Shown: piece by piece, positions 1,634 to 64,000 of the stretch
Position numbering within the stretch: position 1 is the stretch's first letter
Layout of the letters: each line of letters opens with the position of its first letter
Assembly: GCA_039096225.1 (NCBI GenBank)
Contig: JBBPEB010000020.1
Location: forward strand, 248,001-312,000
Length of the DNA: 64,000 nt
Origin: Blastocystis sp. Blastoise
Lineage: Eukaryota > Protista > Bigyra: Opalinata
Direction of reading: 5' to 3'
Notes under the pieces: generated by a model
Databases searched by the model: none
Seen by the model: only the letters and a program-made list of their open reading frames with translations
What the model was told of the DNA's origin: nothing
Translations under genes and position numbers: made by a program

Positions 1634-1702
1634 TATTAATAAAATATATTTTTTATAACAAAACTATTCTTTTAATAATAAATAAAATATAAATAAATAA
1701 TG

Positions 1703-2542: not shown

Positions 2543-2640
2543 ATAGAAATAATAATATTTTAAAACAAAACAAATATTTAAAAAAAAATACATTAATAGA
2601 ATAAATAAGAAATATATATAATAATAAAATAAAATAATTT

Positions 2641-3381: not shown

Positions 3382-3548
3382 CTTCAAAAAAATTGTAAAA
3401 TTCAAATAAATAAATAAATAAAATTTATATAAATATTGCAATTGCAAAAAAAATAGTTGAACTGAATACTAAAAAAATAATAGTTTCCACTAAAATTTGA
3501 ATTTAGCCAATCATATTTCAATATCTTTTGACAAATAGCTAAGTCATA

Positions 3549-3815
3549 GTGACGGAGTTTGGAGCAATATTCAAAACCACCAATTTTGGATCTTTCCGGA
3601 ATGACGACGTTTGGAGCAATTTTCAAAACCATTCATTTCGAATCTTTCCGGAATGACAACGTTTGAAACAATACTAAAAAACACATATTTTATTTTTCCT
3701 GATATGACGTCGTTTGGAGCAAATTCAAAACCACTCATTTCGAATCTTTTCGGAATGACAACGTTGAAGCAATATTCAAAACCATTTATTCTATTTTTTT
3801 CCTGATATGACGAAC
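3549..3815. repeat. ~51-52 bp tandem repeat, ~5 units
   Basis: Units like GACrACGTTTGGAGCAAT.TTCAAAACCA...TCTTTCCGGAAT start at ~3551, 3603, 3655, 3706 and 3757, with a partial unit at 3808. Confidence 0.9.
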
Positions 3816-3891
3816 TTTTAAACAATATTTAATTTGAATCTTTTAAAAATAATATTTAATTTATTTGAATTTTTTAAATATTTATTTGAAA

Positions 3892-7904: not shown

Positions 7905-8266
7905 AGAAATAAAAAAGCCAGTTTCTGATTTTTTTTCCCCAAATGTTTTATAATAGGGGGTTATTTGGTTATTTGGTTCATAACCATTTAACCATTTAAC
8001 CAAAAATTATTTTTTAATATTAGATTTTTAGAAATCGATGACGCACACCCCCTCAACAGCCAATCAAAACGCTTAAAACCTATTTTCATGATTATTTCTA
8101 CTAACTCCCTTACATTTACCACTTCCCCGTAAACCAGAAGTTTTAATAATACTTCGGCCGAGAGCTCCAGCACTCGTCTAATGCCCTTAAAAGGAAAATC
8201 AGTATGATTTTCCTTTATAAGGGCTTTATCGAGTGAAACACTGGAGCTCGTAGAGCGGAAGTATTA
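7905..8266. repeat. Terminal module copy 1 (GGGGTTA array, GATGACGCAC/CCAAT box, long hairpin 8147-8266)
   Basis: Collinear homolog at 40035-40397; similarity stops right after GAAGTATTA in both copies. Confidence 0.9.
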
Positions 8267-16465: not shown

Positions 16466-17059
16466 GGGTTAAATCCCGATAGTCAAGTTTTCAGACATTC
16501 ATTTTACCAGTTGACATTTGTGCCTTATGTATTTACGAGTTGACATTTGTGCCTTAATTATTTACGAGTTGACATTTGTGTCTTAATTTTTTACGAGTTG
16601 ACAATTATAATTTAATTTTTTACGAGTTGGCAATTGTGCCTTAATTTTTTACGAGTTGACAACTATGATTTAATTTTTTACGAGTTGACAATTATGATTT
16701 AATTATCTACGAGTTGACAATTATGAATAATTTATTTGTATTTTTATTTTTAATATTTTCATGACTATTTTTAACAAAGAAACCTGAAAAAAAAAATATT
16801 TTTCTTTAAAAAATCTGAAATAATTAAATAACTATTTTTAACTTATAAATAATTAAATCATAGTTGTCAACTCGTAAAAAATTAAATTATAAATGTCAAC
16901 TCGTAAATAATTGAGGCACAAATGTCAACTCGTAAAAAATTAGGACACAAATGTCAACTCGTAAATAATTAAGGCACAAATGTCAACTCGTAAAAAATTA
17001 GGACACAAATGTCAACTCGTAAATAAATTTCTGAAAACTTGACTATCGGGATTTAACCC
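16466..17059. mobile_element. Foldback-like MITE with ~30-bp TIRs and ~31-bp subterminal repeats (empty copy)
   Basis: TIR GGGTTAAATCCCGATAGTCAAGTTTTCAGA; TTACGAGTTGACA... arrays in opposite orientation on each side; second copy at 54801-57051; no clear TSD. Confidence 0.9.
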
Positions 17060-34299: not shown

Positions 34300-35659
34300 A
34301 TAAATATTTTAATATAGGAAAACGAAAAAATGCAAAAAGAGATAATGCAAAAGAAAAAATTTATATACTATATTTACATACCTTTAACAGTGTTTTGAGT
34401 TGCTGTCTGAAAGAAGCCAGAGAAGTATAAACAAGGAACCTAAAAGAAATTAAAAATAAGCAAATGTAATAAAATACCTTTTAAGAACTGAACCAACGAG
34501 TACACATCATAGAACCTTTTGGGATAGACACAAAAGACTGGCTGACGGGAAGAGAAAACCCAGAATCGAAAACCTAAAAGAATTATGAAAAATATTTTGA
34601 TATATTCTATAACTAAATACTGAAATAGCATAACACTGCTTAGAATGACCTGCAATCCTTATAATATAGTCTATTTATTCTTATAGACAACAAATTAAAA
34701 ATAAGGATAAATTCATATTTAAAGTCAATTTTTTAGTCAAATACTAAAAATTTTCATAAATATTCATTTTTAATTTTTTTAAAATTTTTTATTACTCAGT
34801 ACTATAGTAACAAGTTTTAAACGTTATGTACTGAGCTATTGACACAACACTATTGTATCTGACTACTTTCAAGTTTTAGAAAATTACTCATTTTTGTTGA
34901 CTCTCTGATCTGTTGACTAACTCGTCTAAAAACTATTAATTTCTACATAAAACATTTGTATATTACATAATTAACACCGAAAACAACTTTTTAAAAGACT
35001 TTTATTTGATTCTGACGAAAAGTAGTTTTTTTAGAAGTTTTGACATACTGTTTGTATGCGGAACTTTAAGTCATGATAGAATAAAATAAAAAAAAGTCTT
35101 TTAAAACTCTTATGTCCTCTGATATATAATAAAATATAAATAGACTCAGTTTTGAACAAGAAAAATATTCCCGTAAATATTTTAAAAATGGAAAACTCTG
35201 GTCTGACTGCCCATGGAACAAATAGGCTCGGCTCAATTTTTCAGTGTAAAAAAAATATAAATTTTTGACTTTTTGGCTGAATTTTGGTTCTGAGTCATAG
35301 AGGTCAACTGATTGACTTTTAATTACATTTATGACTCTAAGAAGGTCTTCACTTTAAACACAACTATAAAATATTTTAAAATATTGACCCCATTATTTGT
35401 CGGAATTGCGACTTTAAAATAAATAAAAACGTTTTTGATATTGTGTGACCCTCTATATATAAAAAATAATGTCAGTTCTTTAATAAAATTTGTCTAACAG
35501 GGTCTTTGTGTCTAAATGAAAAGTCGACTTAAAAATTTTGTGAAAATTTTCATTTTTTTGCCTAAGTCTTTTTTTTATTCAAATTTTATTGGCTGAATAA
35601 GTTTTGAACGAAAATTAGCCAATCAAAAACCTTCAAAAAATCAAAAGTGCCTACCAGTG
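34300..35659 (-). mobile_element. End of a CACT-terminated DNA transposon with a small multi-exon gene
   Basis: The reverse complement starts CACTGGTAGG and is collinear with 62693-64000 (CACTATCAGG) over ~1.3 kb. Confidence 0.7.
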
Positions 35660-38204: not shown

Positions 38205-38588
38205 TCCGAACTGACTCTTTTTTTTTGCCAAAAATAAACTTTTGTATATATGGGGTTACTTACTTACTTATTCATTTTTTTTTTAAAGTAGTAAGTAAGT
38301 AAATAGAATATACAAAAAGTTAGAAAAGTAAAAATGGATGACAGAGGGTGCGTCATCACTGATTTAACCAATCAAATTGTTTAAAATAGTTATTTATGGG
38401 AAAAACATATTTTATAGTGTATTTTTCACTATTTCCTTGATTTTTCTATATGATAAGAATTAGTAATTCTTCGCACAAACCCACACAAATATGGGCAACA
38501 TCCCTATGCTAGCGAAGTTCTACGAACTTCGCAGTATAGGGATGTCGGCCATATCTTGGCCGCCTGGGTTTGTGCGAAGAATCTATTA
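38205..38588. repeat. Terminal module, divergent third copy, with hairpin 38466-38582
   Basis: Same order of elements: T-run CCAAA, GGGGTTA + mini inverted array, GATGAC/GTGCGTCATC, CCAATCAAA, then a long hairpin (ATTCTTCGCACAAACCCA / TGGGTTTGTGCGAAGAAT) followed by CTATTA. Confidence 0.7.
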
Positions 38589-39160
38589 TTGTTTTAAAAC
38601 AATTATTCTTCACCTCGTTAGACATTATATTATTTAAAAAAAAATATAAAATTTCCATAAATAATATATTATATATTGATTCTATTAAGGATATCTATTT
38701 CAATTAAAATCATGTTTTTAATAATGAATAAATGAGTTTAAACAAAAATAGATATCATATTCGTAATCCCCGTAAAATTTACTATATATTTGGCTATTTT
38801 TTTATTTGATTACTCAATATCATATATTCACCCACATACCAAGCAAAAGTCAATTGAGCAATTGGTCACGTACACCTTAAAATGGTCGTATCAATATATG
38901 GGTAACACCATTCAATAGGGAATTTTATGCTGATTTCAACGGTGTATCAGGCATGTCTCAACGATGAGTATTTCCCTATTAAAAAAAGGAATTACAATTG
39001 ATTTATTTCTTTTATCAATTGGTATTGTAAAAGGTCATTTTTAATAGTTGTGTAATCAAATAAAAAGTATTTTTATTATTAAAACAATAAAACAAAACAA
39101 ACTAATAAATAAATAAATAAAAAACAAGAAAAACAAAAACAAAACAACAAGAAAGGTCAA

Positions 39161-40034: not shown

Positions 40035-40397
40035 AAATAAAAAGAGCCAGTTTTGAATTTTTTTTTTCCAAACTCTGTAGATATAAGGGGATTATGGGTT
40101 TATTGGTTTATGAAATCCATAATCCATAATCCAAAAAAATATTTTATAATATTAGGGAATTAGAAATCGATGACGCACACCCCCAAATGAACCAATCAAA
40201 TCACTTTAAAATTACTATTTTGATTATTTTTAAAACTACCCTTACTTTTATCACTTCCCCATGTTTCGGAAGTTTTAATAATACTTCAGCCGAGATCTCC
40301 AGCACTCGTCTATTACCCCTGATCGGAAAATCAGTATGATTTTCCGATCAGGGGTAATATCGAGTGAAATACTGGAGATCGAAGAGCGGAAGTATTA
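40035..40397. repeat. Terminal module copy 2 with hairpin 40279-40397
   Basis: Homolog of 7905-8266 with compensatory stem changes. Confidence 0.9.
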
Positions 40398-41381
40398 AGA
40401 ACCTTGCGTAACTGACTGATCAAAACAGAAATGTTATAGTCAAACAAAATATACTAAGGTCAAACGCAATCACGGGAATCAATCTTTTTAGTATTTTTCA
40501 TAGCCATTGACTTTGTGTTTCGCTTTTGATCATGTCATTGGCGATTGATAATAAAAAAAGAAAAAAATATTATCAATAAAAATTGACCAATATATTTGTG
40601 AATGATAAATTGTTTAGCCAATAGTCGTATCACTACTTCCAGTGGCATTACACTTGAAGATTCTAAATGATAAAATCAATAGTGATTGATATAAGAGGCA
40701 TATTTATAAGGACGTTTTCTCCTTAGCCATTCATTATTTTTTGACAATTTTTTGGCTATTTTCCTAACTTGACCTATATTATACTTGGTCAAAGTTTAAA
40801 GTTGTTCTGACCATATGGTCAACATTCCTCATTGTGTATTGACGGTTTGAAGGTATGTCCTATATTATACTATGCTATATATATCTATCTATACTATTTA
40901 TAGGGTTGTGTGTTAGGTTCTTATCAGTGCTTTAAGTAGATTCTTTTTAACATTATACTATCCTGCAAGCAAGAGTAACACTATACTATATAAAAGGTAA
41001 GAGTCATAATAATAGAGTGTTATGTCAGTGTCTATCTTCTTATGAAGTACTTATACGACTACAACAAGGGATAATGACAGATATACTTTTTATTAACTAT
41101 ATTGTAATCCACTTACTGTTATATTATTTATTTATGTTTATTTTATATGTATTTAGTATTATGTCACACTTACTCGTAATAAAAAGAATACAAAGTAAAG
41201 AAGAGAACGAAACAAAACTGATAGCTTATCTTTCTACACATCAATAAATCAAACAAACAATCAATAAAATAGTTTGTGTATGTTATTATATCTATCATAA
41301 TATTATTATTACTATAACAATAGAGACCTATATAATTATAATATATAGGAATAAATATAGAAACTAACTAAACATACTGGC

Positions 41382-42546
41382 CTAACTGTTATTGATTGAA
41401 CGTAAATATTTCTGTTGTGATTCTTTGTGTTTTGTTGCCTTTTGACGATGGAGCTGTTCTATCTTATCATAACACACAACGAGTAACTTGTATTCTTCTT
41501 GACGCAAGGGTGATAACTTTATATGCATATTAGTTAGATATGCTAGGGCAAGGTTAAAGGCATCAAATCTTTCTTCGGAAAGCATGAAAGGTTCTTTAGC
41601 AGCACGAAATACTTTTATCATCCTACCAAAGAAGTTTTCTATTAATATTCTATATCTATTATAGGTAATATCGTTACAACCGGTAGCAAGAGTAATCAAC
41701 TCTGGACAGTCCTCACAACGATAGCCTTTATCACCCATTATGTAGACGTAGCTAGTAGAATCTCCAATATTTGTCATCAGCTCATTGATACCTGCCATGA
41801 TTTGTGGTTTGAAGAGTCTATACATAGAGATATCTGCATTTGAGCAGGGCATAGAAGGGCTTACATAAAGACAAAGTCCTTCATGATTAACTATATATTG
41901 TGCTGATAAGCCAATACCTTTGAACTTGTGAGAGAAATACTTCTTTCTCTGTTCGAACGAGCAGCTAATTGATGATAGACGCTGATGTCTACCATCAATG
42001 ATGAATCGTGAGTTTCTAGCTGGTTCAGATAGTCTTTCTTTCTCAACAGGAAGCAACTTCGTAGACAGTCTTGGACATCCAAGAGTAGTATCAAACGGAA
42101 CAAAACATTTCGATATAGCATCAACACCTTTAATAATAGCTGTTCTTACCTTTGATCCTTTCTCTTTCAGCTGCGAAGCAATAGTATTTATAGGTATTGC
42201 TCTCTTCAAGTAAACTAAACCTAGAAATATTGATTCGTTTGGTGGAAATGACTTTGATCTTTCTCCTTTAAAGTGTAGCATAACTATTTAGTTTAGTTAA
42301 ATAAATAAATTATATACCTGATTGAATTATTTCTTCAACTACGGATTGAGAAAAACCTACCAACGATTCACAGCTTGTATCCGACAATTTTGCATGTAAT
42401 AAAGTTGGATATAATGCTTTTTCATCTTCATCAACGTTGACAATAGTATTATCAAGTTCATAAAGTGTAACCTCTGCTTGTAATTCGGCTTCAAAGTCAT
42501 GACTAAAGTAGTTAAACTCTAGTATAGGAGCAGGATTTTCATCCAT
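41382..42546 (-). CDS. PIF/Harbinger-ISL2EU-like (DDE_Tnp_4) transposase, two exons
   Basis: Intron 42284-42317 joins the ORFs. Motifs: HTH region LVYLKRAIPINTIA; FIIDG, KYFSHK, NAD, MGDKGY, RILIENFFGRM. Possible degenerate TIRs at ~40398 and ~42975. Confidence 0.85.
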
Positions 42547-43078
42547 TATTAAACTACTATTACAAAATAATTATTTATGTAAAACTATTGTAATTAAAAT
42601 ATTCATTTGTGGTGAAAGTATTGAATGGTATATTGCTAATGATGTCCATATTTGGCCAATTTGATATTTTTTTTCATATAAAAAATTAGATATATCAATC
42701 ATATAATATAGGATCATTTTATATATTTCCATAAAAATATTTAATAGCAATTATAAGTGTAATATAATAATGATAGAATATATATGTTTTGATAATATCA
42801 CTTGCTATGTAAATACCTTTTTTTGTAAAAAATTATATCAATCGTTATTGATTTTTGTTTGTGAAATCAAATATAAAAAAAGCAATCAAACACAATAGAG
42901 TATCTCAAAAAATATCGATATTTATTATTGAGAATGTCATCCGTTATTGTGATTGATCAGGTAACCAGGCTTCTCTCCAATTATTGAACTTTTAAATTTT
43001 TAAGACAAGTGATAACTATAATCGCGCTTTATTCAATAAAACTACAAATGATTGATCAATTTGTTTTGATTCTTTATT

Positions 43079-45001
43079 AAAAATTTTTATTCAATAGTTA
43101 TTTATTATTTCAAATCATTCACATAAAATAATTCATTTTTAATGTCATATATCATGCTTAGACATCATATAAGTACTTTATAAATCAAAAAAAGAATATT
43201 AGAAAAATGTTAAAAAAAAGTCAAAAATATGATAAAATTCATATTATTATATCATGTATTATATATGCCTTTCTCCTTGAATTAAGGAGTTAATACACAT
43301 ATGACCCCATTTTATCCAGCTACACATTTCATAGAATGTGTATATGCTGATAAAATTCATCTAAATATCATATCTCGTGACATAGGGTCCAAATGGATCG
43401 ATAAAAAACTAAAAGACAATTTTTTAAAAATATGAGTTTAGTCAATTCAATGAAAATCAGTCGTTTGTTATTTAATTTAAGAGTTAAATAGCTATATTAC
43501 TTTGAATTGTTATTAACAGTCTTTATAAAAAAGAATTATGAATTTTGGATAAGGTTTGACGGAGATATTCACCATATGTCAAACATAGGTAAAAAAGATT
43601 TTCGAAAAAATCCAAAATTTTTGTTTTTATTTTTGATAGCCTTAAATTTGAAATTTCAAAAGACTATTATACGCACGTTATTTGTAGACCATATGTATTA
43701 TAAAACATAAAAAAAAATTTAAATCCAAGACAAAAAAGTTGCAACATATTGCATTCTGACCACATGTCGATCTATCGGATATGAGCTATTAAGATATGAT
43801 TCCATATAGAAATATATCGCTGTATACGAATCTAAACGATATAAAACGATTTGACACCTCTATCCTCGTCAAAAGACCACTTTTCCAATTTGGCAAAAAC
43901 TGAATCATTTTGTACGAAAATTTTCATTTTTTTTTAATTTCGACTTTTCTCAGCGATGAAGAATCGCCATAAGACGTTTGATACAAAAAGGCACATCTAC
44001 GTTGTCTAAAGATTGTGACTAGCTTGCTTTTATTTTATAATATTGAAATCTGATGAAGATATTCTAATAACAAAGTCAAAAAATATTTTTTTAATGTTTT
44101 TCACTTAAATGAGTCTAGAGACCTCATTTATAGGTTAAGAAAGCTAATGTAAACGAAAGACACATCTATATGTTATGCTGATTACATATTGGTGTCATAG
44201 GTAAGTTTTCGATCATTCTTGGTGGTGAATGACACATAACAAATTTAGGTATACACAGATTTTTTGCACAAAAAAAAATCTTTTTTTTTAATTGATCAAA
44301 AACAGCTCATTTAAGTTATATAAATGGACTTTGAGTGTCAATATGTGTTGTACACAATATTCGCCACCAGTTGGACACCTTTTTAAACTTTCAAGACAAC
44401 CTTTTCCAAAACTGATCAAACATGGTGACTCAACATAAAACTAAAACTGTGTCCGTCTACTAAGGCTCAGTGCCCCTTTTACTTTAGAACACGTTTTAGT
44501 CAACACTTGAGTCAACATTCACATCTCGAAATGTAAAGTTGTGTCCTTTTAAAAATCTGATCGGAGGAAAATGATTTTCTAGTGGAAAAACCTACATAAA
44601 ATAAAAAATTGTAAACTAAAAAGTTTTATAGTGGTCACATAAAAGGAAACCAAAAAAAATTAAAAAAAGAAAATTTCAGTATAAATAGAAAATAAAGAAT
44701 TCTATAGAATTTTTAGAATTCTAAAAGAAATTTTAAAAAAACAATTGAAAATTTTAATTTACTATTTTGAAACACAAAAAAAAATCAGCAAATGAATCAA
44801 TAAGCCCCTCGAGAAAATTTTTTTGTAAGTCGTTTTTTGGCTCGGATTTTGACGTTACAATTTTTTTTTATATAGGTCACTATATATATAAATTTTATAT
44901 ATGTTATTAACAATGGGTAAGAAATTATTAATATTAAAAAAGTTATTCCCGAAGTACGGATAACCAAACCCCCGATTTTTCTTATCACTTTATTATATAG
45001 A
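43079..45001 (-). mobile_element. Truncated Helitron 5' end (1.9 kb), inverted copy of 14111-16033
   Basis: The reverse strand starts A|TCTATATAATAAAG and is near-identical to 14133-16033. Confidence 0.85.
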
Positions 45002-46557
45002 TTCTTCCTTCTCCTTCTACTACTATTGAACCTGCTATTCCTTCTTCCACTTCTATTGATCCTGCTACTAATTCTATTTTAAATTCTAGTTCTAATTCTA
45101 CTTCTTCGTCTTCTTCCTCCATTTTGAGATTACCATCTGTTATCAAGTCTATCAAGAAATTTATCTCTCCTTTCAGATTTAAATCTATTGTAACAAAAAA
45201 AATGACGACTAATTCTCAAAAAAGAGAACAAATTACTAGCCAAAAAGATCCTCTTCCTTCTGATAATAGTTCTAATCCTACTAACCATCTTGAGAAAGAA
45301 TCTCGAATTGATGATAAAGAAGGAATTAGCCACTCCTTCTCCACGCTAACTCCTAATTCTTTTTCAGATAGACCTCCTGCTTCTAATCAATCTCAGAATA
45401 ATACAATTCTTCCAAGACCAGTAAATCCGCATAATGTGATTCCTTCAAATATATTTGGAAAAAGAATCACATTTCCAAATGGTTGTACAAATCCAGGTAA
45501 GCGAAAAGAGGGTATCCTGAGTAAAACAAGATATTCGCGAAAGACTGGTAGTGTTAATTCAGTTGGTCCTCAAGAATTTTTTCCTATCAAAAGATCTATG
45601 GAATCAGAAGGTACCAATCAAAGCAAAAATAAATACCCTGAAAGTAAATTTGATGGGTTTTATGATGAAAATAATATTTTTAAAAGTAGTTTATACTTAA
45701 AAAAATGTTTATCTTCTTATAAGAGAAATTCTGAAAATAAATTGAATATGAATACATATAAGTCTAATAGAAATAATAATGATGTTCAAAATGAATGGAA
45801 TCTTGATATAGGTAAGTATAAAGGTAAGTATAGAGGTAAGAATGTAGATATAGATATTGATATTGATAAATATTTAGATACATATAAAGATAACTATATA
45901 GATAAAGATAAAGATGACATAGATAAAGATATAGATATAGATATAGATATAGATATAGATATTGATATTGATAAAGATATTGACATAGATAAAGATAAAG
46001 ATATTGATATTGATATTGATATTGATAAAGGTAAGAATATATATACATATAGATAAAAAATATGATGATGAATTTATTTATATAGATAAGGATGTGAAGA
46101 ATATAACAAGAATAAAGGTTCCTCTATGAAAATGAATGATAAATATTCTATAGATAATTATAAACGTGAAACAAATAATGATTTCTTCTCTCCTAATATG
46201 ATAGATATATATGATGATTCTTTTCATGTTCCTTTCTCACTACCTAATAATTCTATATCACCATATCCTTCTATATCAGGATCTTATTATAATAATAATA
46301 ACACTATTTCTACTTCAAATGATTCTTCTCTATATTATGATTCTTCTATTAATTATCATTCTTATATGAATAATTTTTTACCTTCTCCTCCTTCTCCTTC
46401 TTATCCAGCTTTTTATTATCTTCCTTCTATTTCTTCAACATATATATCTCGTTCTCGTTCTCGTTCTCGTTCTCGTTCTTCTTCTCCTATTTCTTTTTCA
46501 TCTTTTTCTTCTCGTCCTTCTTCTCCTTCTTTTTCAGAAGAAGATGAATTGAATTAA
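45002..46557 (+). pseudogene. Low-complexity Ser/Asp-rich host-like coding remnant
   Basis: Two ORFs separated by stops; (DI)n and (SR)n repeats; 5' part cut by the Helitron end. Confidence 0.35.
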
Positions 46558-49500: not shown

Positions 49501-50147
49501 TAGGCAGGTTTTTGAAATTAGACATCATTTCACGACCTTTAAGACATGAAAAAGAAAATAATTGGTCTTAATTATTTTTAGACATACTTTCACGAAATTT
49601 TAAGACATGTAATCATAAAAAAACAAAGAAAATCAGGTTTTAAATATTAAATATAAACTTTTATTTAATTATTTATGGCTGTATGCCTAAATCAAGGATA
49701 ATTCATTTTCTATAGTATAATAAAGTCATTGACAATGCATGGAAGCAAAGAAAAAATTATAGTAATAGACATCATTCATTTATGTCTGTTATCAAATATC
49801 AACATCATACTGTTTTGTTATGATTATCAAATTATATGTTTATACATCTAGGAAAACAAATGTTGATACTGAAAATACCAAATATTTTAAAATGGATTTA
49901 CTTAATTGACAAACTATCAGACTTTTGGATGGCTTATTTATTTTTATATTATGTTATTGATATTTAGTTTAAATTAACTACACTATTTAAAAAATTATTT
50001 TCATATTCAGAATGTAATTGTCAAAATTTTTTTGTCAAAAACTGAAACGTTATTTGTCATTACTTTTCATCTATAATAAACACTAAATCAACACATTCAT
50101 CGTATTAAAACAGCTTTATAAATGTATATAGACAAATATAATTATTA

Positions 50148-52590
50148 CAGTGCTTTGCAATTTACAATTGCACTGTTTGCAAAATACTTTGGCTTAAAAT
50201 TTTTAAAAAAATCGTGAAAAATTTTTTTTGCAAAATACTTTGGAAGCCAATTTTTTTTTTGCAAAATACTTTGGCATCATGAAAAATTTTTGCAAAATAC
50301 TTTGGATTTGACTTTTTGCAAAATACTTTGGCTTTGACTATTTGCAAAAAACAATGGATTTTTTTCAAAAAACAATGGATAATTTTGCAAAAAACAATGG
50401 ATTTACATATATATATATTAATAAAATTTTTTATTGGGAGCCTACTATAAGGTCAACCAAAATTGCCCTAAAAGCCGATTCAATTTTTCTTTGATTTTTT
50501 ATAGTCGGCTTTTAGGGCAATTTTGGTTGACCTTATATGACTTTGGGAATATATTTTTTTAATTTTTTTATTTTACTTTTAAATGACGTTTTTAATGAGA
50601 TTCGTGTTCTAAAAGAACATTATTTATGTTTTTTATGTTACAATAAACAAAACAAAATTTTAAAAACTGAACAAATTTATATATAATATATATATAAAGT
50701 ATATATAAATAACTGTTTATATATCATCTCTGTTCATAACCTTAGGCCAAACGTTTCGGATAGTTCCTTGGATAGTTGCACGAACTTCCATTGGATTAAT
50801 CGAACGAAAATGATTTCCAATCTTATTAACCAAATCTTCAAGATTTGTAAAGATCTTCAAATCATTTTCAGCACGAGTTTTCCAGAATCCAAAGACTTTT
50901 TCTATTGGATTAAGTTCAGGACTATAAGGAGCTCCAAAAACTAGTTGATGACCAGCTTCACTAACCTTAGCAGCAACACCAGGATCGTGATGAATGGATG
51001 CATTATCCAAATAAATCACGTGACTACCAGTACCATTGAGGGAGTTCAACAATCCACTTAAATAGGATTGAAAGATTTCAGCATTAACGGATCCATGAAT
51101 TAACTCAGTATAACCAACACCTAAAGTAGAAATAGAAGTAAGAGCAGTTATACTTAAAGCACGAGAGTTACAATTATCAAATGCTTTTTCACCTCTTGGA
51201 GAACGCAAATGACGATGAACTAAACCAACTTCCCAATGACTTTCATCAACATACACTATCATATGACCACGAGATTCTAATAAGTTCAATTTTTGAATAA
51301 CTTCTATTCTCTTTTCTTTATTAGCATCAGTATTACTAGCAGGTTCTCTATGAGAAGCAAGTTTAATAGTAAAAGCAGGTTGACCATCTTTTTCCATACC
51401 AAAACGAAGATGTCTAGAAATAGTAGAAATAGAAGCATCAATAACACCATTATCTTCTTCTTCTTCTCCTTGATTATCTTCTTCTTCATTTATTGGTTCA
51501 GGAGTAGCTAATTTCGTAGACATTTCAGTAAGTGTTATCTTATTGTTTTCTCTAATCATCTCAGTTAATCTTATAGAACCATTAACAGTAATTAACTTCT
51601 TTCTTCCTTTCTTCACACTTGATAAATCAATAGAACCACCATCACGAAGTATCTTAATGAAAGCAGATGTTTGTTTCGGTTTAATACCAGTTTTAGTAGA
51701 ATAAGTAAGAACAGACCATGTTTCACCATGTTCAGAATAGTATCTTCTTAACGCATCACGTTGAATTTGAGTGACTTTAACATAAATACGTTTAGGAGCA
51801 ATAGGAACAGTAGGAATAGTAGCAACAGGGTTTTTAGCAGTTTGAATAGGAGGAAGAGCTTCAAAAATCATTGGAACAGATGGAGCAAGTTCAAAATCAA
51901 CAGATTCTATTGGTTGAGGAATAATAGGAGGAACGGAAAGCAAGTAATCAGCACGTGAATCAGGGTTAGTAACGTCAGCGAAAAAGAGAGACATGTTTAA
52001 TAAACAAGTAAGCAATAGTATGAAGTGTTAATATAGGATATAGTACAAAATTCCTTTTAAATAACGAATAGAATTAATGATTAGAAGTTGTTTATTGTAA
52101 CATAAAAAACATAAATAATGTTCTTTTAGAACACGAATCTTATTAAAAACGTCATTTAAAAGTAAAATAAAAAAATTAAAAAAATATATTCCCAAAGTCA
52201 TATAAGGTCAACCAAAATTGCCCTAAAAGCCGACTATAAAAAATCAAAGAAAAATTGAATCGGCTTTTAGGGCAATTTTGGTTGACCTTATAGTAGGCTC
52301 CCAATAAAAAATTTTATTAATATATATATATGTAAATCCATTGTTTTTTGCAAAATTATCCATTGTTTTTTGAAAAAAATCCATTGTTTTTTGCAAATAG
52401 TCAAAGCCAAAGTATTTTGCAAAAAGTCAAATCCAAAGTATTTTGCAAAAATTTTTCATGATGCCAAAGTATTTTGCAAAAAAAAAATTGGCTTCCAAAG
52501 TATTTTGCAAAAAAAATTTTTCACGATTTTTTTAAAAATTTTAAGCCAAAGTATTTTGCAAACAGTGCAATTGTAAATTGCAAAGCACTG
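50148..52590. mobile_element. IS630/Tc1-mariner transposon with ~503-bp TIRs
   Basis: TA|CAGTGCTTTGC...GCAAAGCACTG|TA; TIRs 50148-50650 and 52088-52590 with one mismatch seen. Confidence 0.97.
50717..51994 (-). CDS. DD34E transposase
   Basis: YVDES, YLDNASIH, PYSPELNPIE; 34 residues between the second D and E; intact ORF. Confidence 0.95.
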   Translation of the reverse strand: MSLFFADVTNPDSRADYLLSVPPIIPQPIESVDFELAPSVPMIFEALPPIQTAKNPVATIPTVPIAPKRIYVKVTQIQRDALRRYYSEHGETWSVLTYSTKTGIKPKQTSAFIKILRDGGSIDLSSVKKGRKKLITVNGSIRLTEMIRENNKITLTEMSTKLATPEPINEEEDNQGEEEEDNGVIDASISTISRHLRFGMEKDGQPAFTIKLASHREPASNTDANKEKRIEVIQKLNLLESRGHMIVYVDESHWEVGLVHRHLRSPRGEKAFDNCNSRALSITALTSISTLGVGYTELIHGSVNAEIFQSYLSGLLNSLNGTGSHVIYLDNASIHHDPGVAAKVSEAGHQLVFGAPYSPELNPIEKVFGFWKTRAENDLKIFTNLEDLVNKIGNHFRSINPMEVRATIQGTIRNVWPKVMNRDDI

Positions 52591-53519
52591 TATATAATTT
52601 CATAAGAAAAAATAAGCATAATAAAATACTAAAAAAATATTTCTTTGTAACAACTAGACTTTTTTTACTGTTCTTTTTTGACTTTTTGCTATGTTCTGTT
52701 TTTTATTAGTTTTTCTTTTTGAAGTCTTATGGCTAGCTGCTTTTAGTCCATCTATATATATATATATATATATATATACCATTTTTTATTTGATCTTCGT
52801 TATTGCATATATCTTCTATAAAATAATAATAATAATTAGCATAAATATGATAATATTTTAATAATGTTTTTATAATATTTTTATAATATTAATAATCATA
52901 AGAAAAAATAATTGTATAGAAATATACCATTCAATTCTATGTTATTCATTATTTTTGAAATGGACTGCTAGAAATATTTGTATCAGTAGTTAAGAGTAAA
53001 TCTGTATCTAGTAATATTTCATTATCAGATAATGAATCATTTGAATGGGAGTTAATATTTGCATTATCATCAACTACAAGAGTAGAATCTGAATCCTGAT
53101 TATTAATATTCTTTTCACCTAAGAAAGGAAATATTAAGCTAGGATTTTCACTATAAAATAGTTTATAGTTAGCTACATATTAAAGAATAATAACGGGATT
53201 TAAAATATAATTATTTATATAATAAAATATAATGAGTTTATAAAGTAATTATGTATATTAATATTAGTATAGATAAGAAAATCTTTATATTATATATATA
53301 CAAATATTTTAATGCATGACTATTAAAAGAAGTGGATAACTCATTCGATAAAAAATTATCATCGTCTATAGTATATATATTTGTAACATTACTTTTATCT
53401 TTGATTTTTAAAACATCCATGCTTATGTTTTTGTATTCCCATATAAATTCTTCTAAAAAAGGTTTCTGAGAAAGTACAACGTTTGATTCAATATTATCAA
53501 TATTCAATTTCTATAAAAA

Positions 53520-54115: not shown

Positions 54116-55207
54116 TATAAATGTAATTAAAAATACAATTATATATATAAATATAAATTAAATAATATATATATATATATATAAGTAATGTAAAAACAAT
54201 TAGTATATAGTAAAAAGTACCTTGAATCTCAAAAATTTGAGAAAGCCATTATTCTTTCGTTTATCATTGAGATAGCATTTTATAGTCGAATTAATTGTAA
54301 TAAAATCATAATGACTGCAATTTTGGTGTAATAATTGCTTAGCAATAAAACTCGAAAGACAAACCAAATATCTATCGTTATTCTCAATAGGTACATACAT
54401 TATTTTTCCATTTCTTTTTTCTACTTTTAACCACTCAGCATAGTGAGTTCTAATAGAAGCAGGCATAAATTCACAGATTTTTTAACACAAAAGCTATAGA
54501 TATATATAAAATACCTAATATATACTTTTGCATTCTTTGATACTGTTTTATCTAAAGCAATATGCGTTTTTGTAAAAATTATTTTCAATATTGTATCTTC
54601 AACGAGTGTATTTAAATAATTTGTTTGAAGATGAGTATCTATGAATAATAATTATGTGTTATAAAACATACTTCCATAATTAACGCAATATTTTGACAAA
54701 ATATTTGAAATTATAATATCAGTTTGACTTTTTATCTCTTCACATACAGCAATAAGCTCAGATAGGTTGGACTTTTGAACGACGCTTGTCTTTAATTCAC
54801 GGGTTAAATCCCGATAGTCAAGTTTTCAGACATTCATTTTACCAGTTGACATTTGTGCCTTAATTATTTACGAGTTGACATTTGTGCCTTAATTTTTTAC
54901 GAGTTGACATTTGTGTCTTAATTTTTTACGAGTTGACTTATAATTTAATTTTTTACGAGTTGACAATTGTGCCTTAATTTTTTACGAGTTGACAACTATG
55001 ATTTAATTTTTTACGAGTTGACAATTATGATTTAATTATCTACGAGTTGACAATTATGAATAATTTATTTGTATTTTTATTTTTAATATTTTCATGACTA
55101 TTTTTAACAAAGAAACCTGAAAAAAAAAATATTTTTCTTTAAAAAATCTGAAATAATTAAATTACTATTTTTAACTTATAAATAATTAAATCATAGTTGT
55201 CAACTCG

Positions 55208-56811
55208 TAATAGTATATTACAGGTCTATTTTGGTAAACTGGGTAATTTTCAGGTGTTTTGCTATTAATAGGGGTCTTTTACGAAGTAAAGACCCCTATT
55301 AATAGTAAGCACGTGAAATATTGCCCAGTTTTGCCAAAATAGACCTGTTATGGATTTTTATGGGTTTTTTTAATCAATAATATCATAGTGTTTTTGTTAT
55401 ACCAATTATCTTTTCTTACTCCCATTTTTATCCAATAAAAAATAATGATTTGACATTTTTCTCTATTATTATTTGATTATTATAAAATTTATAAATAACT
55501 AAACAACGAAATGTTAATAATAACAAAAATAATAGCATAAATATTTTATTTACATTATGGATGAAAAAGAAGAAATCCCTACTAAACTTGATATTATTCC
55601 TGTTAAAAGTGGTAATAGATACGATAAATGGTACAAAGAGTTTAAAAACTTCTCATCTAGAATGCCCGGGAAATCTACTGATCAGTGTCTAATGATTTAC
55701 ACCCAGTATTTGATCAATAAACACTTCGCTAGCTCAACAATAAGATCTAAACTCTCCGGAATAAAGAAAATGATAACATCTAAAGAAGAAATCTTTGTTA
55801 ATCCTGTTTCTAATTCACTAATAAATTCTGCTGTAACAAATCATGTCAAGGTATGTCCTCCTCCCAAGCAAAGCAAGGCTCTTAGTAAAGAAGAATGCAT
55901 TCAATTCATTAATTTTCCTGTCGATGGACTATACTTTCTACAGTTGAAGGTCGCACTAATAATTGGTATCTATTGTGGATTGAGAAGGAGTGAGCTGTAT
56001 TCTATGAAGAAGAAAAATATTATTGTAATCATATATAAATATAAACATATATAAATATTATTAATATTAATTATTATATATAATATATAGATTGAAAATA
56101 GACAGATAACTGCCCATATTGAAAGAAACAAGGTTGATCAAGGAGGTTGTGGATTCGATGGTATAATTCCTAATGAGAATGATGGAATAATGATTTATGA
56201 TCATTTATCTACTTACTATAACCTTCTACCTGATGATCCTGAAGTACATTTCTTTCTTGTGGTTTCAAACGATGGATTTACATCTCAGAATGTGGGCCTA
56301 AAAGCAATAGGTGATTTTCCTAAATATATAGCTAAATATTTAGGTTTAAATAACTATGAGAAATATAATGGTCATTGTTTCAGACGTACAATGGCAACAT
56401 TGCTAGCTAATGGAAACGCGAGTATTCATGAATTGCAAGTTCAAGGCCGTTGGAAGAGTGCTGCCGTTGCTCAACACTATATAGACTCTTCTATGACTAA
56501 TAGATTGATGATTTCCAAGAAGACACTGATGCAATCACCGAAGAAGGTACAACAAACACAAGAGGATGTTGCGGTTTCACAAGTTGCTGATTTAGGTAAG
56601 TATTTCAGTAACTGTACTTTCAATAATTCTTCTATTACTTTCAATATTGTTAGTAATAAAGATATAAAAAAATCAACATCTTTCAGTCAGGAGATGAATG
56701 TTGGTGAAAAGCTGTAAAATATTTTACAGGTCAGTTATTGTTGTAAAACCATAATTTTTCGTGTTTTGTTATAACCGTGAAAAACCTGAAATATACAAGA
56801 AAAACCCATAA
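55208..56811 (+). mobile_element. Crypton-like tyrosine-recombinase element with a terminal hairpin and TAA at both junctions
   Basis: Empty site CAACTCG-TAA-AAAATTAAAT (~16868-16887) versus filled CAACTCG-TAA-[insert]-TAA-AAAATTAAAT; no TIRs. Confidence 0.92.
55557..56717 (+). CDS. Tyrosine recombinase (Crypton-like), two exons, 364 aa
   Basis: Intron 56025-56090. Full catalytic set: R (GLRRSEL), K (RNKVDQ), HxxR (GHCFRRT), W (GRWKS), Y (AQHYI); tail FSNCTFN. Confidence 0.93.
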
Positions 56812-59119
56812 AAAATTAAATTATAATTGTCAACTCGTAAATAATTAAGGCACAATTGTCAACTCGTAAATAATTGAGGCACAAATGTCAACTCGTAAAA
56901 AATTAGGACACAAATGTCAACTTGTAAATAATTAAGGCACAAATGTCAACTCGTAAATAATTAAGGCACAATTGTCAACTCGTAAATAATTAAGGCACAA
57001 ATGTCAACTCGTAAATAAATTTCTGAAAACTTGACTATCGGGATTTAAACCATAATATTTTAAAGGATATTTAAATATGTTAATTTGTATATTAATAATT
57101 GTTATAACATGACAAAAGACTATCGTAGTACTTTCTTTGCTCGTCTGTAAGATTGTACACTTCTTCAACAACGGATACAGCACTAAATACCCCTTTCTAA
57201 ATATATAAATATATTATAATATAATAATAATGAATAATAATATATATACGAAAATGCTGTCGTATTTCTTTTTTGTAGTACATATATCATCCTGGCTATT
57301 TTGAGGATTTATTCTAAAAAAATTCAGAAGCCTATATTTGTATTTCTTATTTCTTAGACTTGTTGCTATAGAAGTTTCAACATCAAAAATATTCATGTTT
57401 TTTGTTTTGCTCATTTGTAGCATCGTATTTCAAACCAAATTAACGATCTTCCTGAATAATGGGCTTTCTATAGACAAATTGAAGCATCCGCTATTCTCTT
57501 TCCACATATGAAGCTCACTTGTTCTATCCTCAGATGATAATACCAGAGGTAATATATCTAGTAGTTTCTATAAATTAAGAAAATATTAAATAAATATTTA
57601 CATTAATTATTGTTTTGGAGGAAACCTTTGCCGTTGCGAATCCTAGCTCCTTAATACACTGCTTTCTTAAAAATATTTCATCTCCGTACTGCATTCAAAT
57701 TGGTATTCCACTATAAAAATATATAAAAATTATAAAGTAACTAAAAATACATCCTTTTACCAGTTGTTCGTAATACTTAAAGAAAAATTTCGTTTGCTTT
57801 ATTGTTTTATGACGTAATCTACGTAGGGCTTTGAGTTTCTTTGCATATGGAGCCGCAACAATATCTTTGGAATCGCTAACAGAGGTTACGACACCAACAA
57901 TACGTTGATCATCATTCATACCATCTAATGGAGCATTGCTCAATATGATACTATCTGACATTAGAGCAAAAAAAATTGAAATAATTTTAATAAATAAAAA
58001 ACACATCCGAATTAAACTTATTTTTATTAATTAAGCATTTTCATGGTTTTCTTCCATAAATGACTTGAAATTAATAATTACATTTTCTTAAAATTCTTTA
58101 TTTTTAAGTATTATATATAGTTTCTCGACATAATATTTATTTATAGGTACCAATAAACAGTATTGGTGTATATAATCATAATGAACCCATTCATTTAGAA
58201 AACAATTTACTAAAATAATTAAATTATCCAATAATATTTTTCAATTTTTGGGCCAATAACAGCGGTCATTAAATATTGAGCTGTCTCTATCGCTATCATT
58301 TATTCCATATGGATTATTTTTATACTTTTAAAATTTAACTCTTTAATCTTGGCAACTCAGCATCATATACTAGACATTATTTATAATGAATTCAAAGAAA
58401 TTAAAGCGACCACAGTTTAAACGTTTTGTATAACATAGAAAACTATCAATTTTGGGTATATACTTATGATACATGATAATATGTAACAATTATCTCTAGA
58501 CTATGTAACACAAATAGAGCCTAATTCTGATTCACTATTAAATAATAGAAATCAAAGTATTTATTAAATAAACGTATAGAGTAAACTTTACAGATTCTTT
58601 ATACCCATATATATATATATATATCAATAAATATAACACCATATTTTTTTAATTTTCAACTATTTAAATAAATAGTTTTTTATAAAATTTATTATTCTTT
58701 TAATTTTCAGCTCACTATTATTATATATTTATTAAATATATGTATTACATATTTTCAAATATAATACTATATAATATAGCTATTAATATCGAAACTTATA
58801 ACACCGATGTGATTAATTGTATGATTTCAACAATACAGAATGATGACACTACATGTATAGTACTATATTATACTTTTTCTAGTTTGTTATCAGTTATTTA
58901 CATATTTTTCATTATAATGAAATCGATTTATATCTTATAAACTAATGCTATTTGTTTTAAATATTTATAATATTTACTTTAAATAAAAATTTTTTAAATA
59001 AAATATACATGTATAGACAATGCTGATGACGGCATCTTAAATAATTTTTTTTTGACACTAATGAATATATCAGTATATACATAATAATAACAGTTTAAAA
59101 CATTATTTATATTACATAG

Positions 59120-62100
59120 GAATCTAACGAAATTTTGGGTTGTAACACCGAAAAAGACGAGATTGAATTAGAGGCGTATAAGCTATGGGTAAAACTAGAA
59201 TTACCTTATGAAAAATTTGGCAATATACTAGAATCTTTTATGTCCGTCTGTAATATTGTCAAATCTGATAATAATATCAATCACTACGGACAGTTTTGTC
59301 ATTTTAAACAAATTGATTGGACTAATAATCATAGATAGCCAATCATATTTGTTAAAAGGTCAAAAATGTCTTATAGTGAATATTGATATAAATGGTAACA
59401 GGCAATCGTATATCCGAAGACTTCGCTCCAAACAAAAATTCTTGCCAGAATCATTACGATTATATATATGCCCTAAGTGTCAGCAAGTAACAAATTTTAC
59501 GTTAACGAGAAATCATTTACCAGAAAAAGATATATTATGCCCACAAGATCCAGATATACTAGTAAAAGGTATATATATTATGTATTATTATATATTATAT
59601 ATTATATATTATATCTTATATATTATATATTATATATTATATATTATATATTATATATTATATATTATATCTTATATATTATATATTATTATATTATATA
59701 TTATTATATATTATATATTATTATATATTATATATTATATATTATATATTATATAGATATATATCATACGACGATTCTCCCAATAATACCCCGAATAAAG
59801 AAGCTGCTTCTGAATACGGATACTATTAAAGACTTATGCTATTATAATAAAGATGATATACTGTCGATGCTTCGCCTTCACCAGCAAGAAAGCTATTATT
59901 TACCGATTGATGACGTTATAAGCCGACTTAGTAACTTTCCCGTATCCACCGAATCTATCCCGCTGTTTTTTTATGGTTCTAGCTTTTATAGGTATACACG
60001 CCCATTGTATGATAAAGCCGATATCTTCCTCTTCTTCTCACTTACAAGCGATGGTATTTCAGTTTTCGATAAACCTAAGAAAGACGAAAACAAATCTAGT
60101 TATCCTATTACAGTGAAGCTGCTTAACTATTCTCAGAAAAGGAATACCGATCATCGCCGTTTATGGCTTTATGGCTGCCCTACTGCTAAAATGGTATCTT
60201 CTGTTATTGATATACTATGTTCTGAATTCGAAATCCTTCAAAATGGTATTGATATCACATTTGGCGATTCAAACGAGAATAAGAGAGTTATAGCTATTCT
60301 TCTTGATGTTTATGGTGATTATCCGGCAGTATCCAAAATGGTTAATACTCCATCAAGCGCTAATACATATCCATGCCGCTTTTGTGAGGTCCCAGTATGT
60401 CGTAAAAAAGATAATACGTTTCATAAGGGTATTAAGTGCTGTTATTCAGAAGTTAGCGAGTTACGGGACGAATGCGATAATAAAACGACGTTTTTCATTC
60501 CTATATATCGTCCGAATGAAACAGAAAATTCAACAAGGATGCTTACAAACTATATAGATGAATCTATTATTGATTCAAATGTAGTCGTTTCTATTTCTGC
60601 ACCTATAGAGATACCTACTAGCTCGATATATGAAGATGCAATCAACTCTTCTCCTGTTTGTCTGAGGTCAAATACTACTACTACTACTACTAATATTACT
60701 ACTACTACTACTACTACTACCAATACTGCCGATACTGCCGATACTACTAATAATGCCGATACTACTAATAATGCTGATACTACTAATAATGTTGATATTG
60801 ATGATACCGCTGATATTGATGATACTGATGATACTAGTGATAATAATGAAATTCCATCAATAGTACTTAGTTTAAGTTTTCAGAAACTTAAATATTTTAA
60901 TATGTATGAGTCTACCTCACTTGATCCGATGCATTTACTTAATAATGTTACTACGTCTCTAATGGAGTTATTATGGAATTATCCGAATACTAAAATATAC
61001 TCCAACTTGGTATATATTGCGTCAGAAACAGAACAGGCTGAGATAATTAAAAGGATTTCGCTATCTAGCGATAACAAAAGGATTATTATAAATAGAATGA
61101 AAGAGATAAACTCGTTATATGACGTAGACACCTATCAAATACATACTATACTAGATGATATGAATTTCTTTTCTGCTTCTTCTCATAGTCGTATTATGTT
61201 TTTCTCTAGGTTTCTTCCGCTTCTCACATCGGATTTTACGTGTGCCGACTCTCCACTTGTTTCTGTAATTGAATTATTCGGTTCAATTATATGCCATACT
61301 ATGGAGATTAACCCAATCACCCAGAAAAACGAACTAGAGGCGTTTGAGAAAAGATGTATTCTGTTTGTCTGCCTTCTTGAGTCGGTATTACCCGCTGTCC
61401 TTATAAGTAATCAGATGCATTCAATAAAGCATTTAGCTTTATGTATAAGAAATAGCGGTTCGCTATACTATACGTCAACATGGGAAGCCGAACGATCATA
61501 TAAGACTATTAAGAGAATTACTAAAGGTACGACGAACTTCAATGAATCGGCTATTATAAAAATTCAGGATAGAGAATGCATTCAGATATTCCCCCCTAAA
61601 ATAAATCAAATTGAGAACAATCAGAACAATAGCGATAACCGCTATACGTCTCTTCAATATCATGAAATGGCTGTCGATGGATACTCCGGCATACATTCAT
61701 TCAAAGGCGTTAAGGAAAGGTCATTACCTGATCTATCCGATAAAGATATCCTATCCATTATCTCCCTCCTATCCTCTTCTTCATCAACTTGTATAAAATC
61801 AAAATTATTTTATCCATGTTTCGATGAGTCAACTCCTACTAGTATTATCAAAGAAGCGATAGATCATAACGTGGATAACAGCATAGGCTTATAATGGGGT
61901 TTAGATCATTGAAACGATACAGTTACAGCTCAATTGTAGTTAACGGTGAAATATCATTCAGAGAATATATAGAAAAGTCAAATACTGAATACAAGAATAA
62001 TTCGTATATGATACGAAATATCGTTGTTGAGTTAGATTCTGGTAACTTCGTTATTCGTCCTTTATTGTGCCAGGTTCTTTTTTTCTTACAAATTGAGGAT

Positions 62101-62460
62101 ATGATGATTCTTAAGATACATAAGTACCAACAAGGTAATTTCAGCCAAACTAGATTATATGGCTATTTCGTGAATCCCTCTTCTCGTATAGCATCACTGA
62201 TGGATGACGAGTATGAATACTGTTTACTTAACGAGATGAAGCCATATAACGTGATATCTCTCGACTTTGGCGTATCAAAAGAAATAGAAAGCCGCAATAA
62301 TAATAATAATGTATATATATTATATATATTTGTTTTTAATATATTCATATATATATTTAGAATCCTGACGATGAATATATTCCGGCAAATGATCAAGTCA
62401 ATCAAAATGACGTTTTCCATGTATCGGTCTTCACTTCATTCAAAGACGTTTTAGACGATG
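59120..62460 (+). CDS. CACTA/EnSpm (Transposase_21-like) transposase, multi-exon, likely frameshifted near 61890
   Basis: CPKC; LTSDGISVF, SSYPI, GDYPA, CRFC, LDPMH, HSIKHL...TWEAER; intron ~59569-59757. Confidence 0.85.
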
Positions 62461-62692: not shown

Positions 62693-64000
62693 CACTATCA
62701 GGTCAAAACTAATTTTTAAAGTGTTTTAATTGGTTGATTTTAGTTCAAGATTCGTTCCACCAATAGAAAGAGATTGACTTCAGCGACTTAGTCAAAAATC
62801 GTGATTTTTGACAAAATTTTGACATTTTTTTTCAGTTGACTTTTTATTAGACTTTAAAAAGCATATTAGACATTTTGTATAATAAAATTGACATTAATTT
62901 CTCTTTCTAGATGGTCACACAATATCCAAAACACTTTTCTTTATTTTAAAGTCACAATTCTCTTAAATATGGGGGTCAATATTTTAGAGTATTTATAGTT
63001 CTGTTTGGAGTCAAGACCCTCTAAGAGTCATTAATGTAATTAAAAGTGAATGAGCTGACCTCTATGACTTGAAAACAAAATTCAGCCAAAAAGTCAAAAA
63101 TTTATATTTTTTTTACACTGAAAAATTGAGCCGAGCCTATTTGTATCATGGACAGTCAGACCAGAATATTGAATTTTTAAAATATTTACGGGAATATTTT
63201 TCTTGTTCAAAACTGAGTCTATTTTTATTTTGCTCTATATTAGAGGACACAAAGGTTTTAAAAAGAATTTTTCAATTGATTTTATTATGACTTAAAAGTC
63301 TTCATCCAAAAAGTTTGTCAGAGGTAATAAAAAACAGTTTCTTTCTCAGAATCAAATAATAGTCTTTTAGAAAGTCACTTTTAGAGTTAATTATGTGAGA
63401 GACAACTGTTTTATGTTAAAATTAATAGTTTTTAAAGAAATATGTCAACAGATCAGAGAGTCCAAGAAAATGACTTATTTGTTAAAAGTTATCGTGATTG
63501 AGATACATTACTATTGTATTAATAAGGTTCTTTATGACTTGTTTTAGCCTCTAATTATAATAAGACACTCAAAAAAAATGAAAAGAACAAAAAGTGTATT
63601 TTTATGAAAAATTTTATTTCTTGACTAAAAAATTTGAATTAAAATATGAATACATTTTTATTTTTATTTTATTGCATGCAAGCAGACTCAGACACTGCTA
63701 TGCATATTCTCAATGTTTTTGATGCATGTATGTATTATCTAACTATTTACTGTTTTAATATTTTCTATTTTTTTATATAATTCTTTTAGGTTTTCTATTC
63801 TGGATTCCTGTTTGCTGCCAGAAAGTCTCTATGATTGATGTCAGTAATATTAGTCAAAAGGAATTGTTTATTCTATTTGTTTAACCAGGTATTTTATTAC
63901 ATTTTATTTTTTATTTTTTTAGGCTTTTTGATGAGTTTCAAACACAGTACAAACACACAGCAAGTTAACACATGGTTGGAGGTATATAAATATAGTATAT
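62693..64000 (+). mobile_element. Left end of a CACT-terminated DNA transposon (continues beyond the window)
   Basis: Starts CACTATCAGG; diverged homolog of the reverse complement of 34300-35659. Confidence 0.7.

Follow-up and report, generated by a model that had tools for sequence, protein, structure and literature searches.

Animal Cryptons were described by Kojima and Jurka in 2011 as elements without terminal repeats, with the CryptonI group found in insects only and published CryptonI lengths of 1528-1980 nt (PMC3212892). A 2026 review treats the mechanism of Crypton transposition as undemonstrated, with a double-stranded circle assumed (PMC13565253), and the only active Cryptons observed, which belong to a different Crypton group, showed a rise in copy number beyond simple excision (PMC9977147). 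[quoted passage not shown] Bacterial SE elements undergo strand-biased circularisation by tyrosine recombinases (YRs; PMC9345347). In eukaryotes, DIRS-1 has an 88-nt internal complement of both of its ends that is required for transposition, and its single-stranded cDNA intermediates have been shown (PMC7192593).

We analysed a 64,000-nt stretch of the genome of Blastocystis sp. Blastoise, here called the window, and identified in it a CryptonI-type YR transposon of 1601 nt that sits inside a MITE. The filled MITE spans 54801-57048, and its alignment with an empty copy elsewhere in the window is clean across the insertion point. The empty copy thus sets the ends of the element, as the initial annotation had proposed. 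The element, its ends and its host are as follows.

55211-56811 (+): CryptonI-type YR transposon, running from the base just after the inferred cut through the AA at its right end, placed by the comparison of empty and filled sites and by the flanks of multi-copy relatives
54801-55210 (no strand): left part of the host MITE, which has tandem units of 29 nt and inverted ends, from repeat comparison
56812-57048 (no strand): right part of the host MITE, from repeat comparison
16466-17059 (no strand): empty MITE copy, with the target site AA^AAA after 16877, from the empty/filled alignment
55209-55210 (+): host-derived AA 5' of the left junction, with the inferred cut at 55210/55211; the dinucleotide varies among the insertions of relatives
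56800-56811 (+): right end, which ends in AA and is predicted to complete the hairpin on circularisation, from the junction fold and duplex matrix
56724-56772 (+): degenerate copy of the 5' arm in direct orientation, whose start lies 88 nt before the right cut; 0 of 300 shuffles were as good

TAA occurs at 16875-16877 in the empty copy and at 55208-55210 and 56809-56811 in the filled one, and had been read as a 3-bp core shared by an element extending from 55208 to 56811. TAA is indeed present at both ends and the right limit stands, but the core is invariant only as AA, and the proper start is 55211. Among the insertions that we compared, the right end always finishes in AA and is followed by a host A in 16 of 18 cases, and the two bases before the left end are AA in 12 of 17, otherwise TA, AC or TT. 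Because the right end is constant and the left dinucleotide variable, we infer that the cut is made at AA^T, at the 5' edge of a spacer of about 7 nt, and that the left AA is host DNA. A classical target-site duplication was rejected on the variability of the left dinucleotide. The ends of the element do not repeat each other, the repeats present being internal and subterminal. The arm copy near the right end recurs at the same 84-88-nt offset from the right cut in four further families (L001, L003, L012 and L036), and the copies in these five families may be accessory binding sites. We found neither a second YR copy nor a YR derivative in the 64-kb window.

The element has a single YR gene, and the list of its open reading frames contains no reverse transcriptase and no DDE transposase. 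No helicase or Rep is encoded by the element, and its protein had no Pfam match to the GCR1_C domain. The gene is arranged as follows.

55557-56024 (+): YR exon 1, 156 codons, with a SAM-like N-terminal part and the first catalytic arginine, R143, from the open reading frame and alignment
56025-56090 (+): GT-AG intron of 66 nt, in frame; a 364-aa database record equals 156 + 208 residues
56091-56717 (+): YR exon 2, 208 codons, with K14, H95, R98, W121 and Y130, from Pfam, alignment and alignment with Cre

Exon 2 matches Pfam family PF00589 (Phage_integrase) with an E value of 6e-06. In the database searches, which used exon 1 and exon 2 separately rather than the spliced protein, exon 2 matched the 364-aa record P0001 from Blastocystis sp. 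Blastoise at 100%. Residues K14, H95, R98, W121 and Y130, in exon-2 numbering, are invariant or nearly so among the aligned relatives, and together with R143 of exon 1 they align with Cre. The earlier claim of an intact YR was therefore upheld, with a full catalytic set carried by two exons around the intron. An RNA intermediate was rejected because the element has no reverse transcriptase and introns are retained. A fold search with a structure model of the firefly relative P0013 (pLDDT 82.6), which has a disordered C-terminal tail, returned Cre first and IntI4 at rank 38, with the Tn1549 integrase among the matches; on this model of a relative, the YR of the element appears closer to Cre than to IntI.

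Like Cryptons in general, the element has a YR with the full catalytic set as its sole transposition enzyme, lacks reverse transcriptase, DDE transposase and terminal inverted repeats, and belongs to a group with dispersed copies (two in a sister family and six in the firefly). It differs from CryptonF and CryptonS in lacking their terminal direct repeats of 4-6 bp, only AA being shared here and that not always, and it has neither the GCR1_C domain of the former nor the TATGG termini of the latter. With CryptonI it shares the character of a YR-only DNA transposon of 1.5-2.0 kb without a C-terminal domain, as well as the described absence of terminal direct or inverted repeats. Its catalytic motifs match the CryptonI rows in the supplement of PMC3212892, which we compared by eye, the Repbase sequences not being in our tree. 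The closest named protein matches are beetle and other insect proteins, including those of Tribolium. By motif, size and relatives the element is best filed with CryptonI, an assignment in which the Repbase sequences were compared by eye. The host is a stramenopile, which widens the known range of the group, and the element differs from the published description in a conserved hairpin with an end complement. In the window copy this structure consists of the following parts.

55211-55217 (+): 7-nt spacer, whose first T faces a T in the fold (13 of 13 families); consensus pairing begins at column 8
55218-55281 (+): 5' hairpin arm containing two CAGG motifs at a distance of about 30 nt, from the fold; 14 of 49 pairs show compensatory change among four Blastocystis families
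55282-55286 (+): cGAAg apex, a GNA triloop; relatives have cGTAg, cGCAg, GCAA, GGTA and CTTG loops
55287-55350 (+): 3' arm of the hairpin, from the fold
55351-55357 (+): spacer partner, ending in TTT, with a mismatch at +1 to its own spacer and complementary to the host AAA after the cut
55358-55369 (+): internal segment complementary to the right end, with TT opposite the core AA and 10 nt after it, from sequence comparison

The bulged stem at 55220-55348 that had been proposed for the left end was confirmed, at -49.8 kcal/mol and z = -12.65, and none of 200 shuffles was as good. The cGAAg triloop at 55282-55286 is found in the centroid structure, with one bulged T, but the minimum free energy structure has an 8-nt loop instead. 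The segment 55358-55369 is, as claimed, the exact reverse complement of 56800-56811, and the 12-mer occurs once per strand in the 64 kb. When the predicted circle junction was folded, the energy fell to -57.8 kcal/mol, as against -49.8 kcal/mol with the host flank in place, again in agreement with the annotation. The true right end outpairs all 4302 other nearby 22-mers in the window and 999 of 1000 shuffles. A chance origin of the hairpin and end complement was rejected on these shuffle tests and the 22-mer comparison, and a telomere-resolvase reading was rejected because the palindrome is centred on an odd loop some 72 nt away from the real ends. A bubble of 9 nt on either side, described as largely mismatched, does contain three mismatches; its other positions form four Watson-Crick pairs and two of the G.T type, so the pairing here is weak, and the sequences of relatives suggest that the bubble is best read as a 7-nt spacer followed by TT.

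A search with exon 2 found three more proteins in the same genome, with 43-45% identity, and more than 2000 more distant proteins. Loci were taken from Blastocystis, the firefly Photinus, Tribolium and metagenomes, and 13 families were curated; these are related, and counts over them are not counts of independent events. The left end of every curated family is a hairpin of 135-151 nt followed by the reverse complement of its own right end, and this arrangement is kept although the sequences differ between families. All 13 have the loop at 68-77 nt from the cut, and their left ends start with T after a dinucleotide that is mostly AA. Element lengths in the relatives range from 1454 to 2036 nt.

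Conservation of the complementarity between end and internal segment was a test set in advance, and the complementarity is conserved. In an all-against-all duplex matrix the own right end was the best partner in 13 of 13 families and the host flank was always poor, a count that is biased for the eight single-copy families because their right ends were located by seeking the complement. The ends were set independently of pairing in the other five, namely the window family, L001/L005, the firefly family (from six copies), Tribolium and a gut-metagenome family (from six or seven copies). No other nearby 22-mer pairs as well in 11 of the 13, the exceptions being Tribolium and L015, the latter with an end-complement match of only 7 bp. 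A blind scan with nothing but the hairpin as its starting point located the right end in 12 of the 13 families, L015 being the exception, and at two further loci, L035 and L053; it fails on short contigs. Within the arms, compensatory changes affect 10 of 53 pairs in a second comparison, besides the four-family comparison given above. The bulges differ among families and are not kept in place. The insect-like families have an asymmetric spacer bubble that is partly paired. Roughly half of the loci that were fetched have no long stem, many of them on short or partial contigs; those without a stem despite enough flank (L014, L032, L037, L047, L049 and L051) are perhaps decayed. On these comparisons the end architecture is family-wide in CryptonI-type elements and not the property of one copy.

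The sister family L001/L005 has two dispersed copies, and the intron is kept in the duplicated copies. Several contigs are from gut metagenomes, one of them labelled human gut; in the three that were included in the tree, the YR groups with Blastocystis proteins (98/93), and the remaining ones are copies of the Blastocystis-grouping families. One multi-copy family with varied flanks (L038, L041-L044, L046, L049, L050 and L053) lies on such contigs, and its copy number and varied flanks suggest recent activity, in a culturable organism. Scans of viral contigs, and a scan of prokaryotic genomes with one relative, returned no relatives within their reach, which extends to close relatives only.

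The Tribolium element appears to be nested in another CryptonI-like copy (L012:834-4103), L016 is rearranged, with a perfect inverted copy of its own left end (177-397), and at L037:2700-2800 the 5' arm is absent and an apparent reversed left end of a second element lies just downstream. Two copies of one family differ by an exact inversion of the hairpin tip (L053:55-260 versus L050:1005-1152), with the loop TGC in place of GCA, the result of either a template-switching inversion or an assembly artefact. The inverted tip suggests template switching or inversion in a palindrome, and the same motif pair recurs as a direct copy near the right end; both would suit an account in which the arms are inverted protein-binding repeats in double-stranded DNA, homogenised by template switching or conversion, and no folded substrate exists. 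We give that account very little credence, since it leaves unexplained the in-register pairing across junction halves that lie 1.4-2.0 kb apart and have family-specific sequences, as well as the fixed T.T mismatch and the strand bias.

This bias is seen in the mismatches and the stabilities of the two strands. On the top strand of the 13 families G.T exceeds A.C by 35:10, and the top strand folds better than the bottom one in 12 of 13, counts that are weakened by the relatedness of the families and by base composition, which may add to the G.T bias. The triloops vary only at the N of GNA, being GAA, GTA or GCA; the other loops are GCAA, GGTA and CTTG, with no such loop in L002 and an inverted, non-GNA loop in L053. 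GNA triloops, and loops of these types, are stable in DNA. The folded strand is also the sense strand, the G.T bias is compatible with G.U pairs, and GCAA and CTTG are known as stable RNA tetraloops as well, so a transcript spanning the junction might fold and guide or regulate the recombinase, loosely like a bridge RNA. Such a role seems highly improbable, as GNA triloops with a free middle base are characteristic of DNA, the fold recreates a YR core site that has its cut at the spacer edge, and a target-binding loop is absent. We know of no RNA-guided YR.

TT stands at +8 and +9 in 12 of 13 families, so the joined ends read AA ^ 7 nt TT, that is, as inverted elements around a spacer. A cut at the 5' edge of a spacer between inverted elements is the standard geometry of YRs. 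Given the T.T mismatch at +1, an incoming host A would turn the mismatch into a pair. The spacer of the element is found at 17 of 17 left junctions and at no ordinary right junction. If both strands were exchanged with a 7-nt stagger, the spacer should turn up on either side; its presence on the left only is thus the best genomic sign of a one-strand exchange. A folded top strand is consistent with the strand bias, the polarity of the cut and the inheritance of the spacer on one side only.

The junction could also be read as an ordinary duplex core, AA-7 nt-TT, with a duplex circle as substrate. The internal complement might then serve as a splint that aligns or restores the ends, much as in DIRS-1, after which the circle would be made duplex and would integrate through this core in the manner of conjugative transposons, with a non-matching spacer tolerated. 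The 88-nt internal complement needed for DIRS-1 transposition (PMC7192593) is a precedent for it, TT at +8 and +9 mirrors the AA, the right end resembles the inverted start of the arm in some families (7 of 10 positions in the window, 8 of 10 in Tribolium), and the Tn1549 integrase is among the fold matches. We nevertheless regard a splint alone as unlikely. Two-strand exchange predicts some spacers on the right, where all 17 are on the left; pairing would be expected across the join, whereas every family has a T.T mismatch at +1; and a splint has no need for a 60-bp arm of fixed length with a stable loop.

The initial annotation had predicted a head-to-tail junction of right end to left end, and an exact case was found in one contig of a related family, L044, which starts with 55 nt identical to its own right end (1-55) joined to the left end exactly as predicted. 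The right flank of the firefly locus L010 is a near head-to-tail junction with one mismatch. These may be tandem copies or circles, the L044 case possibly a chromosomal tandem. They are also compatible with the extrusion of the same folded site as a cruciform from a supercoiled duplex circle or tandem dimer, with no free single-stranded circle. PMC5027507 mentions such extrusion for attC. The two arms form a long inverted repeat that is nearly perfect, and the bottom strand of the window hairpin folds nearly as well as the top (-45.5 versus -49.8 kcal/mol). Extrusion would be hindered by the bulges, internal loops and G.T pairs, however, and eukaryotic DNA circles are only weakly supercoiled. 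The formation of a duplex circle without a paired site would also be left unexplained, and we judge a cruciform to be decidedly unlikely.

The folded top (sense) strand is probably the recombination site, with single-strand exchange into a duplex, A-rich target. The sequences show the anatomy, the covariation, the strand bias, the position of the cut, the one-sided inheritance of the spacer and the intact catalytic set, and the spacer inheritance and strand bias support this reading indirectly. The joining of the right end to the left would produce right end-AA ^ 7-nt spacer-arm, paired throughout by the internal complement, and the joined fold, whose construction recalls attC and CTX attP(+), would resemble a duplex YR core site in which the spacer is mismatched. 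The YR would cut the top strand alone at AA^T and exchange it with a duplex host target cut mostly at AA^A, whereupon incoming host A residues would pair with the T residues opposite the spacer. Replication would then resolve the junction left by the single strand exchange. On this reading the intermediate would be a free circle of single-stranded DNA, and not a splinted excision complex or an extruded cruciform.

Excision, which together with the source of single strands is the least supported part of this scheme, would probably be the reverse one-strand transfer, on DNA exposed during replication or at a fork. The internal complement would pair with the right end 1.4 kb away and so unite both cut sites, and in the window the host AAA would lengthen this pairing by three bases. 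A top-strand circle would be freed, and the other strand would retain a copy. We lean slightly towards extending the scheme to CryptonI as a whole, from Blastocystis to beetles, as self-mobilising units like integron cassettes whose YR, with the internal complement of the far end as its guide, peels off a top-strand circle and inserts it in folded form by one-strand exchange into short A-rich targets.

By analogy, the element would work like an integron cassette or a CTX attP site, and it is a member of neither class. As in the cassette, most of the hairpin is at one end, and the other end adds the last box on circularisation; the cut follows AA, 5' of a poorly paired spacer, and the fold is strand-biased. 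Unlike the cassette, the Crypton encodes its own recombinase and has no attI and no array, its hairpin lies upstream of the gene and on the sense strand, and its enzyme appears closer to Cre than to IntI4. The RYYYAAC/GTTRRRY boxes of attC are absent, the core being AA^T, as are the conserved extrahelical G and T, and bulge positions vary among families. Recognition of extrahelical bases in the manner of IntI is not supported, because the bulges move between families and the modelled enzyme is Cre-like.

The element resembles CTX attP(+) in having a hairpin of about 150 nt that contains two core-like sites in inverted orientation, in the exchange of one strand pair, for which the junction sequences argue here, and in a choice of target set by pairing beside the cut, which for the Crypton is a proposal. 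CTX differs in using the host XerC/D at dif and in obtaining its single strands by rolling circle, and both of its sites are inside the genome, whereas the Crypton site is split between the ends, and the Crypton encodes no Rep and has a short A-rich motif as its target. From IS200/IS605 come the parallels of one strand leaving as a circle, again a proposal for the Crypton, and of the involvement of hairpins; those elements differ in having an HUH enzyme and small hairpins at both ends. Strand-biased YR exchange, likewise proposed here, is shared with the Vibrio SE elements, which differ in needing several proteins and for which a hairpin is not mentioned in PMC9345347.

DIRS-1 is also a eukaryotic YR element with an internal reverse complement of its joined ends. 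It differs as a retrotransposon with RT/RNase H, gag and long inverted terminal repeats, none of which is present here. The DIRS complement is exact and is thought to template end repair before duplex integration; that of the Crypton is continuous with the left-end hairpin and mismatched at the cut. As the nearest eukaryotic precedent, the DIRS-1 complement tempers the novelty of our element. A literature search that did not extend to Repbase Reports or subscription journals yielded no paper linking Cryptons with attC or integrons or reporting such a hairpin. Within the literature that could be searched, this is a known family with an undescribed end architecture, and the implied chemistry has so far been described in bacteria only.

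The proposed mechanism, if true, would extend the folded-single-strand YR recombination of integrons and the CTX phage to eukaryotes. It would be a case of replicative single-strand YR transposition in eukaryotes, and for Cryptons it would be the first mechanism to have a defined substrate. The architecture offers a testable substrate, cut site, strand and target rule for Crypton transposition, and the material needed is small, namely oligonucleotides and one 364-residue protein. It also connects the DNA Cryptons with the internal complement of the DIRS retroelements, and annotators gain a means of calling ends in a family described without terminal features. A compact integrase with a target requirement of 2-3 bases could find use as a tool.

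The other long hairpins of the window were also inspected, and one of them, at 38455-38611 (-), was scored for a right end. It is long, has a cGTAg loop and carries AA and then TAGATTCTT at its start, like a CryptonI left end; no matching right end was found within 6 kb and no YR remnant is present. It is possibly a decayed or a different element. Two repeats of about 360 nt that are 79% identical (7907-8275 and 40035-40413) form an element family. Each repeat has at its end a long bulged hairpin whose triloop is GTA, and the hairpins of the two copies show compensatory differences. An inverted-repeat element of about 150 nt (16265-16415) lies immediately upstream of the empty MITE.

By eye, 227-7056 holds a virus-like or Polinton-like gene cluster, including a probable DNA adenine methyltransferase at 1838-2659 (-) and a probable primase-helicase of 1063 aa at 3865-7056 (+), and 24884-29623 holds Helitron-like Rep/helicase open reading frames of 537 and 1027 aa. 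Those at 41382-42281 and 59477-62454 resemble, also by eye, Harbinger-type and CACTA-type transposases. Dispersed repeats occur as inverted pairs at 14110-16039 and 43075-45002 (98% identical) and at 34688-35550 and 62813-63674 (79% identical). An apparently intact DDE transposon at 50140-52599 has a 432-aa open reading frame and perfect inverted repeats of 505 nt, and a similar DDE_3 gene adjoins the Crypton in L001.
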